A DNA stretch of 63,527 bases, the filler included, from Hyphochytrium catenoides (taxonomy: Eukaryota; Protista; Hyphochytriomycota): NCBI GenBank assembly GCA_900088475.1. It is 4 parts of 4 records of this genome, joined end to end, with 100 filler letters (N's around TTAATTAATTAA, not from the genome) between each part and the next. Parts side by side here need not be neighbours in the genome. Positions count along the whole stretch, not along the records: positions 13,236 to 45,152 come from FLMG01004357.1; 3 more parts are not named here. The stretch is one strand, 5' to 3'. Both the position numbers and the translations under genes were made by a program. The notes under the pieces are model-generated. The model was not told where the DNA came from, did not search any database, and saw only the letters and a program-made list of their open reading frames with translations. Each line of letters opens with the position of its first letter. Position 1 is the stretch's first letter. Positions 21,626 to 32,030 of this stretch are shown here, in pieces.

Positions 21626-23543
21626 TTAATTTGGGCCGGCATCCTTGTCCTTCACTTTCTCTCTTTCAATCTTCTTGCCGTCCTTATCCAGTTGCAATAT
21701 GGCTTGGGGCAGAGGATGGTATTGCTCCTGAGACAGCCAAGGCCGTCCTCCCCTAGCTTTTGCGAACTTTTCCTTGTCACTTTCGGCTGGAAGTGACTCT
21801 GACATTTGCTCTCCCGTGTTCATATCGTTAAGTCCTAATTCATCATTCTCCTCGAAGGACCGGGTGTACCTCTCTACGGTCAGCTTTGGATCCTCTTTGG
21901 GTGCGTAGGGATTGTAAATGAAGCTGTTGGCCAGCGGATCCGTTATCCGAAGGGTGAATGGAACTGTGCCACTCTTGAGCTCGCCTAATCGAGTTAGGAA
22001 GTCCTCTAGCTTTGCCTTGTACGATCCTTCGGCACTATCTCCATGAGCAAAAGGATTGCCCTGCTCTATATTCTCAATCATTTTCTCTATGAGGCCTTCG
22101 ACGGTGGTATAAATTCCTCCAAGCGAGCCTCTGGCCATCTCAAACTCCAGTTCTGGAATCTCCAAGCCAGCGGAATCAGACTTTAGCACGTCTCTGGCGA
22201 CGTCTTCAGGGTCATCGCCTGAGATTCTGAGGGTTGTGGTCTCTCCATAGGACGGGATAGCACCACCGCCCTTTACTTCATTGCTCCTAAAACCACATTG
22301 TTGACAGTCATATGACATGATCAACACCTCCTTGAAGTGCGGGATGTCTGTCATGCACATCAACATCTCTCCGGGAACTTGACAATTAGGACATCTCTCT
22401 GCAAACCGAAGAACTTCTTTATGTGCAAAGTTCTTTTCCTCTTCGTCTTCATCCCCTTTAACAGCCTGGTCGACGTACTTATCCAGCCCTTCATTGCGTG
22501 CTGGAAGCTTCCTAGGCGCTGTGCCTAACTCGTGCTCCTCTTTCTTCTCTGGTTGAAGGCCTACCGCTAGGTCCTGAGCTTCCGACCTGAAATAACTCTC
22601 TACCTGCAGATTGGGGTCCGTCTTCGGCGCCAGAGGATTCTCTATAAATGAGTTGCCTGCAGGGTCATCTAAAACCACTGTAAAAGGCAGCTTGAGACCT
22701 GAAGACGGGAAGGCAAGTGGAATGGATAGCGCCATGGGACATTAGCAAGCGGGAGGAGAGGTAGAAAGGAGAGAGAAGCTACGAGACGATAGATGCCGCT
22801 AGTGGCGGGTGGCGAATGCGCTGTTGAAGCTCAGCCCCTCACTCCGTGAACTTTTAGGGACCCACAGCAGTAGGTGGCGCTAGATAATGGATCTGTTACC
22901 TGTGGCGTACATAGTAAGGTCTGCTATGATGTCGTCAACTTTGGCTGCCAGTGCTGGGTCAGCTAGTCGCCGCTGTTCCTGCAACTCCATCAGGTCCTTA
23001 GAAGCCTTGGAAAGGAAGCCTTCTATAGTATTCACAGTCCCGGATTGAGTATTCGCAGGAATCTCAAAGTCCAGCTCAGGAAGGGTCATCGTGGCCGTGT
23101 CTGCCTTGATAATTTGCCGGTTGAGATCGGTGGTTTGTGTGGCCTTCAGCGTGTGTTTGCAGCCTTTCTCCTGAATCTCACCGCCAAATTGAACCTGCAA
23201 GGGCCCATTTCAGATGATCAGAAGCCTAGAAGTGACAGAAGTATCGGTCAATCCTCTTAAAATCTACCTCATTGTTATGGAATCCGCAGTAGTCGCAGTC
23301 GAAGGACATCAGGATGATCTCCCGGAAAAATGGGATCTTAGCCAACATGAGCCGGGTCGTGCCTTGTTCCTCGCAGTTCATGCATAAACTCTTCAGTTCC
23401 GTAACCCCGGTCTCCGCGTTAGTCCTAACACCTACATCCTCTGCCTCTTCGTTCTCTTCGTCTGCTGTCTGTTGTGACTCAGCGACATGGCCCACTGCCT
23501 CCCGCAGATCTTGGTACTCAATATCACTGGATGATTTTGTCAT
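21626..23543 (-). CDS. ZPR1: Zinc finger protein ZPR1. Exons 23543-23268, 23194-22900, 22698-21626
   Basis: Two ZnF-A modules: [57 protein letters not shown], and [50 protein letters not shown]. Confidence 0.95.
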
Positions 23544-25314
23544 ATTCCACTCCGACCGAGGGCCACTCTCCCCACGCTATCCTTACTCAACAATTAGGCA
23601 CTAGTCAGTTGCCTACAATGAAAATCTTATCCTAACTATCCGCTGCTTCAGATCGAACACCTTCTATCAACTAAGGCCATGCACGTCTCCACAATAGAGC
23701 TCTGTAGCTCTGCTAAGCAGTACTTGTTGTCTGCCGATAACGGAGCTCAAGCTCCGACCGGGAGCTCTGACCACCAACAGGAAACATCAGAATCACAGCC
23801 GCAGAGACCAAAGACCAAGATCAAGAACTCCAAGAATCGAATCTCAAGATCTTCATCAGTTACTAAGCCTTCCAATCTATCCGGTAATCATAATCTTAAG
23901 TTCCTCAACATAATCGTACGAGTAGGTGTCCAGTGTCCAACTCATAATCGGCATTCACGAAAGTAAAGTGGAATATGATCCGAACCTAAGGAGTACAGGA
24001 TTTTCTTGACCTTCTCTCCAGGTGGATTTAGGACCTCAAGCCTAATACAAACGAGAAGTGGCCGTCTGATACGAAGGTAAGGGAACGCCCCTCAAGATGT
24101 CAGGAATTTTCTTGGACAGGGATGCCATGCTGTGTTTGGCATCCTAGAAGGTTTAATTGGGCCGTTCGTCGGAATTCTGAAAGCGGTGTGTTTGCAGCCA
24201 GGATGGCGGAAAATTCTAGCCATGCGAACATACACATGGCCAGGTTGAAGATTGGCGGCAAAGTAATAATGACCCAGCGCCATACATATAGCCCCAGCCT
24301 TCCTCTTACTACGCCTGGATATGGATTAAACTGACACAGAAACAGGTTCACGTTTCTCTTCTAAGAGCTTTCTAGAAGCAGTAGTAATACGCCCCAAATA
24401 GGCTTTAAAGGGTTCTAATTCTCGTATTATCCTCGGTCCATTCTTATGTCAGAATCGGCTCCAAGGCGTTTTGGAATGAGGCGATTTTCCCCGCTCTAAT
24501 ACTATGAGCTTTATTTATACACCATAGATAATGTTAGCAGCCCCATCCCCATTGTGTTTTTTATAGGATGTTCCGCCGATGGAAAAGTATCTGGAAAATG
24601 GGCGCCGATGGTTTTCTCTCTCCCGCGCGGGTGCTGCACGATCTCCGGCTCACAGAGCTCCACTTTTGCTTTTCACATCCGCTGCGAGGGATTATGGTCA
24701 ACCCTGGTTAGCTTTCACGCAGCTCACGGCTGGCGCAGGGTCTCCATCTACAGACTCGTTGCGGCAGGTTCTAAGGGTTAGCTACACCCGAGCGCTCAAG
24801 TGTCGGTATCCTACATTGTCAGACAAGGCGAATTTGGGCATAACCGGAGACGCCAGCGAGAAGGCTGACTGGGTTAGAAGCTAAAGGTGTTGATAGAGAA
24901 CTGGGCCAATCTTGAGGGCAAACATTTGCTGCATTGCCCTTCTGGGTACTGAGTCAGCTCGGCCGGTCATCTGAGCCTAAGTGTTGACTGCCGCTAGACA
25001 TCTCCTCGACGAAAGGCGACACGAAGGTGGCTGCTTATCCGTACAGTACCCGTACGCATTTTTCCACTCATAGAGCCACTCAAAAGGGTTCTGAAACGCG
25101 GTATTCGGGAAGCGTACTCGGCAGAGTCACGGGGAAAGGGAAGGATGTCCCGCTAAGGATCATATGAGCGAGGAGATCGCAATCTACCCCTCCCGTCTCA
25201 ACCCTAAAAGGGTGTGGACTCTTTGGTTGGGGAGATACCGGGGCAAAAGTCAATTTGGGTCTCGCAAGGAGGGAATATTGGTGGATAGAGTTAAACCTTA
25301 CTGGTCCAGGGATC

Positions 25315-26331
25315 ATGGCGCAGCTTGCGAAGAATATAGAGGACGCAACTAAGAGGTACAAGCGATGGTTCGACAGGATCTCGCCAACCTCAAGGAAGAT
25401 ATTGCGCAAGAAGAGCTGTCTCCCACATCCTCTCCCAGAGCTTTACGTGAAAGATGCTTCGACTATACACTTGAAGCGGCAGCCATTTTTTGGGCTTCTT
25501 TCTGGAGAGCTTTTGAAGCTTGCTCAACACGGGCTTGACAGAGGGTGTCAGCCAAAGGCCTGCCCAGATGGAACCGGTGGCGTTTATTTTCTCAGAGGAA
25601 AGGAGGGCGAATTTATTGCGGTCTTCAAGCCTCGTGATGAGGAGATCATGTGTCCGAACAATCCGAAGGGCTATCGGCTGGAGAATGGCGTCATTGGAGT
25701 GACAGAGAATCCTCAGCACTCCGGCTTCTTACTTGGGGATGGGGCTAGAAGGGAACATGCTGCGTATCTTCTGGATGCTTCCTATGGTGGCTTCCACAGA
25801 GTACCCCAGACCACACAAGCCTACCTCCAGGTAGAAGCGGGAGGTCCTTTCAAGGAGGGATCGCTGCAGGCATTTGTCCAATCCTCCATTTCTGCAGAAG
25901 ACATTGGCAGCGGACTCTTTGTCACTGATGATATCCAGCGAATTGGGCTCTTGGATATCAGGCTTTGCAATACTGACCGGCATGCGGCCAACATTCTTCT
26001 CGTGGAAACTGACAAGAACAAGCAGGAACGACAAGGCAAGTACTCCATGATACCAGTAGACCATGGCCTCTGTCTCCCTCGCTGGCAACACTTAGAGGCT
26101 ATCCGGTTTGAATGGCTTAACTGGAAACAGTCCAAAGAGCCATTTCAAAAGCAACACTTGGAGTTCATCGACGCATTGGACTTGGCCAAGGATGCAAAGA
26201 CTTTGCGGATGTTGCACTTTGATGAGGACGCAATCACTACCATGAAGCTGGGCACTTTGCTTCTGAAGCGATGTGCTAGAGAAGGAATGACGCTATATGA
26301 CATCGGAAGCCTTATGCAAAGGGAAGGAGAC
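25315..26331 (+). CDS. Phosphatidylinositol 4-kinase type II (plant PI4K-gamma-like), 3'-truncated at an NN gap; true start uncertain
   Basis: Motifs DGTGGVYFL, AVFKPRDEE, GDGARREHAAYLLD, GSLQAFV, IGLLDIRLCNTDRHAANIL, IPVDHGLCLP, FEWLNWKQSKEPF, GMTLYDIG. Family-like sequence stops at NN 26332-26333. Confidence 0.9.
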
Positions 26332-27348
26332 NNCACACAGTGGATCCCGCGACAACGGCAGCTTGAGGGCAGGGCAGGACACAACAACAAAACACATGCT
26401 TTGACAGTAAGGAAAGAAGCATTTCAAAATAAACAAGATAGCAAGCTGAACACCAGGAAGGGAAGGACTGGTGCAGGAAGCAAGCTCACCTGTGGTAGGA
26501 GTAAGATAATTCTATAGAAGGGCAGGGACGGCAGAGAGGGAATGTAGCTATAACCGTAGCCGTTGTACAGCACACAGAGAAACACATGCAGAAAAAAAAA
26601 TGTTTGATTAAGGAAAGGTATGTCAATAAGAGAGGTTGTTAGGGCGGGACCCTAACTAACACCTGTAACAAAAACTTATGATGATTGAGATATTGCCATC
26701 TTGGAGCTCCACTATACGAGAGTTATAGCTTATGGCTGGGCTGGTGTCGCATGATGGACGGGGGCTGGTTATCTCGGGTGCTGTTATCATTGTGGGGCCT
26801 CCTTATCTTCTTATTGACTGTCAGCTGTGTAGATAGGAGCTTTTGGCGGTTGATTCATAGACGGCCCAAAGCGGTAGAAGCAGTTGTTCAGTTGTTACTG
26901 TACAAGAAGTTACCAGTTCCTCACTTACAGGCAGCGGTGGCGCTACCCCAGGTACACGACAGTTATCAACTTTCACATGTGAGGCAAATACTTAGGAGGG
27001 TACTTCAACCTAACCGTCGGATACCCAGGTGGAAGGGCATCCCCGCCCGAAGAGAATCGTCATTGATGAAGACAAAGATATAGAAGATCTGCACCGAATG
27101 GTGATGATGTGGATCAGAAGCTCACAGGGTAGGTTCCTAGGAGAGTAGAGGAGGTCTGGTCTGCCCAGCTGCCCCAGGAAGTGAGAGGCACCTTTTTTTT
27201 CTAACGGCTCCCTTCTTTCTGAGAGTAGCATCAATGCTTGCTTGTCTCTTGTCTCTTGCTTGATGGAGCACCAGCATGCTGTTGCGCCTTGTAGCTAAGG
27301 CTGCCGACGTTTCCAAGTTGACCACACATAGAGGGCACACCTTTCAAT

Positions 27349-30085
27349 ATGGCGCCCACCCTTCCTGGAGATGACTCTGGAGCTCAGTCTTCACTCCGAC
27401 CATTTAACGTCAATGTCGGCATCTTGGGGCATGTAGACAGTGGAAAGACGAGCCTCGTGCGGGCTCTTAGTACAGAGCTCTCTACAGCGGCCCTAGACAA
27501 GCATCCCCAGAGTCAAGAGAGAGGAATGACCTTAGATCTTGGTTTTTCTGCTTTTCGACTACCTGTTCCAGAGCATTGGCGCGAGGTGAGATGGCGACAC
27601 AGATATGTCTCTCTGCCAATCAAGGCTGACATCTTGACTCTCACAGGAGGATAGCCTAGTGACAGGCCAGGGCCAACAACCGTCCTCCTCTCTACCCTAC
27701 GATGGCGTGCAGTTCACGCTAGTGGATTGCCCCGGACATGCCTCTCTGATTCGCACCATCATTGGAGGTGCACAGATCATCGACTTGATGATCTTGGTGG
27801 TCGATGTGACTAAAGGGATACAGGCCCAGACGGCCGAGTGCCTCATTATAGGGGAGATTCTTTCAAACCAGCTTATAGTTGTCCTCAACAAGATAGACTT
27901 GCTTTCGGAAGAAGACAAAGAGGAGGCACTAAACGAAAGAAAGGAAGAGATCAGGAGATATCTTGCAGGTACCAAGTTCACAGACGCACCTATCGTTGCT
28001 CTCTCGGCCGCTGTTGGAGGCGAAGAGTCAATAGGAAAGGTCAGGAGAGTGACTCTTACGATCGCCTATGGTCTTTTGCGCTCCATCATAGTAGAATACT
28101 GTTCCTATCTATCTTGGATCTACCGGCATTCTCTCTGTGTGTTCGATCCCATTGGTAATCGCTCTTTGTCCCATGCTCCTGCTTTGGTCGACTATGCTCT
28201 GCAGGCTGCAGCCCACACTCAAAAGACTTTGTCCGCGAAGCGTTCTAGCTCCTCGTCCGTGCAACTTCCCGCTACCATCGGAGTTGACGGACTCTTAGAC
28301 CTGCTCTCCAGAAGCGTCAAGAAGCCCGAAAGAGAGAAGGATGGATCCTTCCTCTTCTCAGTCGACCATTGCTTCCAAATAAAGGGAAAGGGCACGATTC
28401 TCACGGGCACAGTGCTTCAGGGTGCCGTGAAAGTGAACCAGCTTATAGAAATACCGCAGCTCAAGGTCCTCACTTCCTCTTGGTCCTTTCCTCTGAGCTC
28501 TTCCTAACTTCGTCTGCAGGTGACCAAGAAAGTCAAGTCGATGCAAATGTTCCATAAGTCCGTCACTTCAGCCCATCAGGGAGACAGAGTTGGACTCTGT
28601 GTCGCTGGTCTCGATCCTTCGGCACTTGAGAGAGGGCTTGCGTGTTCTCCGGATACTATTTACCCCTTCTATGAGGCAGTTGCCGTTGTGGAGCGGGTGC
28701 CAGCGTATAAAGGGAAGATAAGAAGCAAGGCTAAATTCCATCTATCTGTTGGGCATGCCACCGTCATGGCGAGAGTGATCTTTTTCTCCAAGGCGGGAGG
28801 GCCAAGACAGAAGGAAGCGGGAGACGCCGTAAACCCGCAGTGTTTCTCATACAACGACATGGAGGAATATGAATATCAAGATGAAGGCTTTGGAGAGCTT
28901 GGGGAGAAGGAAGAGCTAACAGGCGGAGGACCGATAGCAAGCAGGTCAACAGATAACGGACCACAATTGGTTCTTTTGCAGCTAGAGCAACCGATCTTTG
29001 CCCCTAGCCAAGCCATTATATTAGCTTCCAAGCTGGACATGGACACGCACTTAGAGGCCTGTCGAATTGCTTTCCATGGACGACTTCTTCAAGCTTTCTC
29101 TCCCTCCTCCTCCTCTCGTCCCGTCACAACGGGGGGAAGTAGAGGAGAAGAGCTTAAGCTGTTGCGCTACAAGGAGCGTGTGGGCGTTGTTCAACGAATA
29201 TCAACGAAGGCTGCTTTAGAAACGGTAGAAAGGAAAGAGATTGTGGATGCGGAAGTGATAGTGGATGGCCTTTTTGGGAAAGAGACGGACCTCTCGCAAT
29301 ATCTCTCTCTTCAGGTTGTGAAGGAGGGAGAGGGGGCGGTGGGACGCATCGTTAGCTCCTTCGGAAAGACAGGAAAGGTAAAGGTCCTTCTCCCTTCTGT
29401 ATATTCTATTAAGGAGGGCGACAAAATACTCCTTCCCTTCAAGAAGTATATGTCTGTACATCAGCAGGGAAAGAAGAGGAAAAATGGACGAGACAAAAAG
29501 ATTTATCAGGACGAGAAGACTGTCTCGCTATGCGCTGAAAGGCAACGCTTGAGATACAACGCTGATAGACTTACAGAGACCTTGGGCTCAGAGAGTTTAG
29601 ATTCCTTAGAGTTCTCAGGCATTAAAAGCTCTGAGCGCGTGAAGGCCCGAAAGCATAGAGAAGAGGAGCAGGTAATGAAAGGGAGAGAAACAGAAGGCAC
29701 ACTGCGCGGGATCATCGAGAGGCTGAAGGGAGAAACAACCTCTGATGGACGGAACCCTATGGCGATATGCAGTGGGTTGTTCGGCTCTGCAGAGGAAGCC
29801 GAATGTTATATAGGAAAAGCGACAGAGACGGAACTAGGTAAGAGAGTATTCAGCTCATGAGAGAAGATTCAGGAGAAACTGCGTAGCAACTCGTCGCTTT
29901 CATTGTTTCCTTTCCGCGTGGCTTCTGCTTTGAGTTGTCTCCCTCACCCTTCTCCATATTATCCTCAATCAGGGGAACAAGGTACTATCACTGCCACTTT
30001 TGGGAAGGCTGGCAAAGTACGCGTCTCTTTCGAAGGAGGAACTCTTGCCAATGTAGGGTGTGCAGTGCAAGTAAGCAGGGTTTAA
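27349..30085 (+). CDS. EEFSEC: Selenocysteine-specific elongation factor eEFSec. Exons 27349-27585, 27647-28039, 28205-28465, 28520-29837, 29973-30085
   Basis: NVNVGILGHVDSGKTSL, DKHPQSQERGMTLDLGFS, TLVDCPGHASLIRTIIGGAQIID, GIQAQTAECL, NKID, SVDHCFQIKGKGT, KKVKSMQMF, GDRVG, FHLSVGHATV, CRIAFHG, and domain 4 GLFGKET..SFGKTGKVKV..FKKY. Confidence 0.95.
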
Positions 30086-31992: not shown

Positions 31993-32030
31993 GGAGNNNN
32001 NNNNNNNNNNNNNNNNNNNNNNNNNNNNNN

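Follow-up and report, generated by a model that had tools for sequence, protein, structure and literature searches.

The eEFSec gene of Hyphochytrium catenoides, which codes for the selenocysteine (Sec)-specific elongation factor and lies in a 63,527-nucleotide stretch of DNA (filler included; hereafter the window), encodes a protein that carries a second domain-4-like barrel, referred to here as D4', beyond its ordinary C-terminal domain 4. Our analyses make it probable that this is a working eEFSec whose domain 4, a RIFT-type beta-barrel, underwent tandem duplication in an ancestor of the stramenopiles, and that D4' serves as an additional docking module on a tether. The two-domain-4 architecture appears to be undescribed, and the window offers one example of what is the norm in its lineage.

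Gene structure and kinship of D4' with domain 4

A single gene on the plus strand, at positions 27349-30085 and assembled over GT-AG introns, was identified as eEFSec because GTP_EFTU, euk_SelB_III and eEFSec_4th were all matched in Pfam scans run per exon. It encodes an EF-Tu-like GTPase domain with a P-loop (PF00009, in exons 1 and 2), a eukaryotic SelB-type domain 3 (PF21208, euk_SelB_III; 95.4 bits, E 4.6e-27) and, over residues 235-321 of exon 3, a regular domain 4 (copy 1; PF21131, eEFSec_4th; 37.8 bits, E 2.4e-9, cut-off 27). The FKKY motif of copy 1, at 29438-29449, aligns with the FKRY of animal and green-algal eEFSecs in the domain-4 alignment. The parts of the gene are the following.

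27349-27585, plus strand: exon 1, with the ATG and the P-loop GHVDSGKT (GTP_EFTU E 1.2e-7); GT donor at 27586
27647-28465, plus strand: exon 2, remainder of the GTPase domain and start of domain 2 (GTP_EFTU E 4e-20)
28520-29837, plus strand: exon 3, which runs from the last part of domain 2 through domains 3 and 4 and the linker into the N-terminal half of D4' (euk_SelB_III and eEFSec_4th)
29153-29461, plus strand: complete domain 4 (copy 1), closing with the FKKY hinge motif; PF21131 at 40.4 bits in the genome search
29462-29704, plus strand: basic/charged linker, with a K-rich cluster right after FKKY and a Q-D conserved in the alignments
29705-29837, plus strand: N-terminal half of D4' (copy 2), with the motif IERLKGETTSDGRNP; matched by the D4' profile at 35.8 bits genome-wide and at 39-56 bits in local hmmsearch
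29838-29972, plus strand: last intron, GT-AG, 135 nt, phase 1, split codon G-GG (Gly)
29973-30085, plus strand: last exon (exon 4), C-terminal half of D4' (29973-30082) with the FGKAGKVRV hairpin and the final strands; stop TAA at 30083-30085

Because domain 4 is, by sequence comparison, the nearest kin of D4', tandem duplication is the simplest origin of the latter. Indeed, the D4' and domain-4 profiles were aligned by hhalign with a probability of 96.5% and an E of 8.5e-10, and a 52-sequence D4' profile (A4), searched across the whole 61 Mb H. catenoides genome, matched only three sites, all of them in eEFSec, i.e. domain 4 (53.4 bits), the last exon (43.7 bits) and the N-terminal half of D4' (35.8 bits); the eL33 gene of the same genome was not matched at E up to 10. 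In BLASTP comparisons, copy 1 was similar to the codon-aligned last exon (29975-30082) at an E of 5e-5, and the N-terminal half of D4' taken alone showed no significant similarity to copy 1 (E 0.5). The last exon was also recovered with PF21131, at 20.3 bits (E 0.023) in the genome search and 17.6 bits (E 0.0044) in the exon scan. Within D4', the motif IERLKGETTSDGRNP of the N-terminal half recurs unchanged in oomycete-type homologues, and the G-L-F and F-G-K-x-G-K elements are invariant in the D4' alignment. The terminal KRYVF-type hinge strand is absent, the sequence stopping a few residues past the last strand both in the window and in the homologues (median tail after D4', 0 residues).

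A preliminary description of the locus had proposed an eEFSec with a tandem second domain 4, and the hhalign and A4 matches, together with the fold of a homologue described below, bear this out. The linker of about 80 aa that it reported was counted at 84 residues, basic/charged, with the frame open and free of stops between the two copies; the lack of a KKY or hinge motif in copy 2 was likewise found; and the completion of D4' across the GT-AG intron at 29838-29972 is supported, as far as gene comparison goes, by the same codon and phase in a relative and by intronless homologues. These homologues, six proteins of 714-765 aa which cover 97-99% of exon 3, are encoded by intron-free genes in which domain 4, linker and D4' form one open reading frame. 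The relative (Logan SRR28521184; 16,160-nt contig, L027) has a syntenic locus, where a minus-strand ZPR1 gene is followed by a PI3/PI4-kinase gene and by eEFSec. The last intron of this eEFSec, of 61 nt (L027:9467-9527), interrupts the same codon in the same phase; the intron sequences are unrelated and the flanking exons conserved.

Retention of the last intron in H. catenoides would lead to a stop after 7 codons, and we infer that D4' is translated after its removal. Between H. catenoides and the relative, the two halves of D4' gave pN values of 0.19 and 0.29 and pS values of 0.83 and 0.90, with synonymous sites saturated; at the level of these codon comparisons, D4' is shown to be under strong purifying selection. 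Exon 2 probably holds a further phase-0 GT-AG intron (28040-28204, 165 nt), since 55 odd residues encoded there have no counterpart in homologues, and the predicted product would be about 773 aa long if this segment were also spliced out. The residues it encodes are rich in Cys, Tyr and Leu.

Fold, distribution and origin of the two-barrel eEFSecs

The fold of D4' was modelled with AlphaFold2 on a homologue (P0003, residues 668-765) using alignment A4, which resulted in a small all-beta barrel with one short helix (pLDDT 88.8, pTM 0.82). In a VIA-align search of this model against 48,161 PDB representatives, the C-terminal barrel of Bms1 ranked at the top (Z 10.8) and domain IV of archaeal SelB ranked third (Z 9.7, rmsd 3.2 over 77 aa, 23% identity), with eL33 (Z 9.4), Tsr1 (Z 9.3) and residues 473-583 of human eEFSec (Z 7.0, rmsd 2.7 over 70 aa) also matched; in the human protein, domain 4 spans residues 477-575 (PMC5059743). 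Foldseek placed eL33 first (E about 1e-4, TM 0.67). The domain-4 fold, which the preliminary description had asked of copy 2, is thus predicted for the homologue, given its Z of 9.7 with archaeal SelB domain IV and 7.0 with human domain 4. A model of both barrels together (P0003, residues 484-765; pLDDT 81.8, pTM 0.54) was confident for each of them, with the linker mostly disordered as judged by its low pLDDT.

Comparison with known factors places D4' close to one part of the translation machinery and sets its arrangement apart. Human eEFSec (PDB 5IZK; ribosome-bound, 7ZJW) shares the four domains and a hinge-type motif after domain 4, and its residues 473-583 superpose on the homologue D4' model; however, the human protein and all 64 non-stramenopile eEFSecs retrieved end at most 20 residues past domain 4, where the protein studied here continues into a tether and a second barrel. 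Domain IV of archaeal SelB (Methanococcus maripaludis, PDB 4AC9) is the best translation-factor match of the model, although archaeal SelB has that domain only once. Bacterial SelB resembles the present case in adding C-terminal modules to a Sec-specific EF-Tu-like factor; in bacteria, however, the extension consists of winged-helix domains that grip the SECIS directly, with no known SBP2, whereas the module added here repeats the beta-barrel of domain 4 and occurs alongside SBP2. No winged-helix family was found in the Pfam scans of the eEFSec exons and homologues. The C-terminal barrel of Bms1/Tsr1 and eL33 (L35Ae) share the RIFT-type barrel and its G-x-G-K hairpin with D4', but show no sequence kinship to it past the fold, the D4' profile missing them both in the genome and in a large protein library. 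Matches to PF04950, the Bms1/Tsr1 C-terminal family, are present among the precomputed Pfam matches of several ordinary eEFSecs, in agreement with the structural likeness of D4' to these barrels.

To survey its distribution, an oomycete-type D4' profile was searched among 1.84 billion proteins and returned 56 representatives, nearly all of which carry, according to local scans, D4' at the extreme C-terminus behind a domain 4; two-barrel members with names came from Peronospora matthiolae, Aphanomyces astaci, Chrysophaeum taylorii and Choristocarpus tenellus. A diatom-type D4' search yielded 99 eEFSec-length proteins, including those of Fistulifera, Epithemia, Mayamaea, Cylindrotheca and Nitzschia. 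Two barrels were found in 118 of the retrieved proteins of at least 540 aa, and D4' was present in every named stramenopile eEFSec retrieved (oomycetes, diatoms, a pelagophyte and a brown alga). None of the 64 eEFSecs of animals, green algae and the amoebozoan Heterostelium had it, each showing one barrel and no tail longer than 20 aa. In trees, a single change divides one-barrel from two-barrel eEFSecs (SH-aLRT 84-94). The row of the window lies on a long branch and shifts its position between trees, so that ZPR1 matches served to place the organism.

The source organism is, judging from its genes, a stramenopile that falls outside the oomycetes sequenced so far and has more introns than these, because the best named matches of its ZPR1 protein are all from oomycetes (49-53% identity). 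The second barrel is no peculiarity of this gene, D4' being the norm in all named stramenopile eEFSecs retrieved. The preliminary description had considered that the duplication might already be documented as such a norm: the norm itself was found, and no description of it was, a duplicated eEFSec domain 4 receiving no mention in the full-text literature searched, which turned up algal selenoproteome surveys and human structures.

Sec machinery and the proposed role of D4'

The remaining Sec machinery of H. catenoides looks canonical as predicted from the genome, with tRNA-Sec, SBP2 and an ordinary AUGA/GA-type kink-turn SECIS, so that each of the components for which the preliminary description suggested a search is present. 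The tRNA-Sec was detected at 73.9 bits, with anticodon TCA by ARAGORN. The SBP2 homologue is a 980-aa open reading frame (G000:C1424:2925-5867, minus strand; L018) with its L7Ae domain broken by an assembly gap (N run), and only its C-terminal part is similar to human SBP2, over residues 616-699 of the human protein (7zjw_B; E 8.7e-9). A candidate selenoprotein gene of SelW/Rdx-like type (G000:C562:89921-90154, minus strand; L023:1501-1734) carries an in-frame TGA as the U of a C-G-G-U motif; about 230 nt downstream, a SECIS_1 match (L023:1208-1269, minus strand; 24.1 bits, under the gathering score) shows the AUGA, AAA and GA elements. Taken together, tRNA-Sec, SBP2 and this UGA-containing gene with its SECIS point to use of Sec by the genome. 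A genome-wide SECIS_1 search returned no match, but since the control genomes gave none either, this outcome carries no information. The three glutathione-peroxidase loci (G000:C1403, C2984 and C1293; L019-L021) have no in-frame TGA, and their products appear from sequence to be of Cys type. A role of D4' as substitute for a lost SBP2 was rejected, an SBP2 homologue being present.

To our knowledge, the mechanism of eEFSec is known from mammals only, with a single domain 4, and in the study of structure 7ZJW this domain reportedly engages the SECIS. Domain 4 is basic in one- and two-barrel forms (median pI 9.7, net +6) whereas D4', always terminal, is near neutral (median pI 7.3, net +0.5); the linker has a median pI of 10.3 and varies in length among two-barrel proteins. 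The proposal of the preliminary description that the second barrel may be an added RNA- or SBP2-binding module, in a variant UGA-recoding apparatus, is conjectural, and a general RNA-binding role for D4' is weakly disfavoured because of this difference in charge.

In the scenario that we consider likely, the C-terminal domain 4 would have been duplicated in tandem in an ancestor of the stramenopiles. Copy 1 retains all canonical domain-4 features, including the hinge motif and the strong positive charge. D4' forms the extreme C-terminus, joined on by a basic tether that is mostly disordered; it has kept the barrel and the FGKxGK hairpin, whereas hinge strand and positive charge are gone. It may provide a second contact of eEFSec with the SECIS/SBP2/ribosome assembly in UGA recoding, presumably via a protein partner or a specific local contact rather than general RNA binding, and the other parts of the pathway (tRNA-Sec, SBP2 and kink-turn SECIS) would stay canonical. 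A more specific form of this proposal, in which stramenopile eEFSec grips the recoding complex at two points, domain 4 keeps its ordinary task and the partner of D4' (a second site on the SECIS, SBP2 or an element of the ribosome) is used so by no other eukaryote, is speculative and rather unlikely. If it were true, eEFSec recruitment in stramenopiles (diatoms, brown algae, oomycetes and kin) would follow a mechanism different from that modelled for mammals. Diatoms and other algae of the lineage that bears D4' are noted for their use of selenoproteins, and the conservation of a second domain 4 across this lineage suggests at least one undescribed variant of the recruitment step in UGA recoding.

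Several observations weigh against the duplication and docking scenario. The 29837/29973 splice and the translation of D4' are both deduced solely by comparison. D4' scores below the PF21131 gathering score (17.6-20.3 against 27 bits), and its homologues reach E values of 0.03-0.09 with that family. The predicted fold is that of the D4' of a 34%-identical homologue, as a stand-in for the spliced D4' of the window, and the two-barrel model gives the relative placement of the barrels with low confidence (pTM 0.54). The apparent absence of D4' outside stramenopiles comes from few named taxa. Finally, when the D4' columns were removed, the exon-3 row of the window fell outside the other two-barrel proteins, on a long branch and with 330 residues.

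Different explanations might account for D4', two of which concern whether it is a domain-4 copy within the protein at all. That copy 2 lies outside the protein, as a gene-model artefact, a fused neighbour gene or an untranslated relic past a retained intron, would agree with the early stop that intron retention entails, but it is hardly credible given the intronless homologues with domain 4, linker and D4' in a single open reading frame, the 118 two-barrel proteins, the purifying selection on both halves of D4' and the intron position kept in the relative. The chance that D4' was instead recruited from another RIFT protein (the eL33/L35Ae or the Bms1/Tsr1 barrel) is practically negligible: eL33 and Bms1 do head the Foldseek and VIA-align rankings and one homologue matches Pfam Ribosomal_L35Ae (E 8.5e-4), yet the D4' profile matches domain 4 at 53.4 bits and leaves the eL33 of the genome unmatched at E up to 10, hhalign joins D4' with domain 4 at E 8.5e-10, and no eL33 or Bms1 protein occurs among the 56 matches in 1.84 billion proteins. 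Derivation from eL33 or Bms1 was consequently rejected, both on the genome search with A4 and on these library matches.

The other two accept a translated second barrel and assign it a different task. D4' might be a second SECIS- or tRNA-binding RNA module, a eukaryotic counterpart of the bacterial SelB C-terminal domains that would give a direct and stronger grip on RNA. Such a module would fit the homology of D4' to the domain said in the 7ZJW paper to engage the SECIS in mammals, the invariant FGKxGK hairpin and the fact that its nearest folds, eL33, Bms1, Tsr1 and Gar1, all reside in ribonucleoprotein particles, as well as the statement that, on the ribosome, the SECIS interacts with both EEFSEC and SECISBP2 (PMC11739927); the loss of positive charge (net +0.5 against +6 in domain 4) and the continued presence of an SBP2 gene nevertheless render it improbable. 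Alternatively, D4' could be an intramolecular regulator, a tethered mimic of domain 4 docking on domains 1-3 or 4 and thereby controlling the binding of tRNA or of the SECIS, or the swing that domain 4 makes in a GTP-dependent manner. Human domain 4 swings upon nucleotide exchange, its hinge motif touching domain 3 (PMC5059743); D4' is tethered, neutral and devoid of the hinge strand; and pairing of RIFT barrels arranged in tandem is known from riboflavin synthase, a weak match of the two-barrel model. However, that model shows no confident packing (pTM 0.54) and its alignments with riboflavin synthase have rmsd values of 17-20 A, and we regard a regulatory role as decidedly improbable.

Database records and neighbouring genes

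Oomycete, pelagophyte and diatom eEFSecs (P0124, P0126/P0180, P0138, P0198 and P0264) bear the UniRef label 'Elongation factor Tu, chloroplastic', which looks like a propagated misannotation, and other two-barrel eEFSecs are named 'hypothetical' in their source records. The D4' profile A4 is of practical use as a highly specific marker, with 56 representatives recovered from 1.84 billion proteins. Prokaryote-style gene calls on Logan contigs run through eukaryotic introns (P0130, P0005 and P0211), which leads to fragments or false insertions. An apparent three-barrel eEFSec (P0211) was discarded as an artefact, because the gene call had left an intron in place that divides its domain 4.

An assembly gap (a short N run, 31997-32030) lies in the window about 1.9 kb past the stop codon of eEFSec. 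Two genes were identified upstream of eEFSec.

21629-22735, minus strand: ZPR1 gene (jr-ZPR1, E 2.5e-54)
25255-26517, plus strand: PI3/PI4-kinase-domain gene

The order and orientation of the three genes ZPR1, PI3/PI4-kinase and eEFSec are kept in the relative (SRR28521184), whose ZPR1 is 68% identical to that of H. catenoides.

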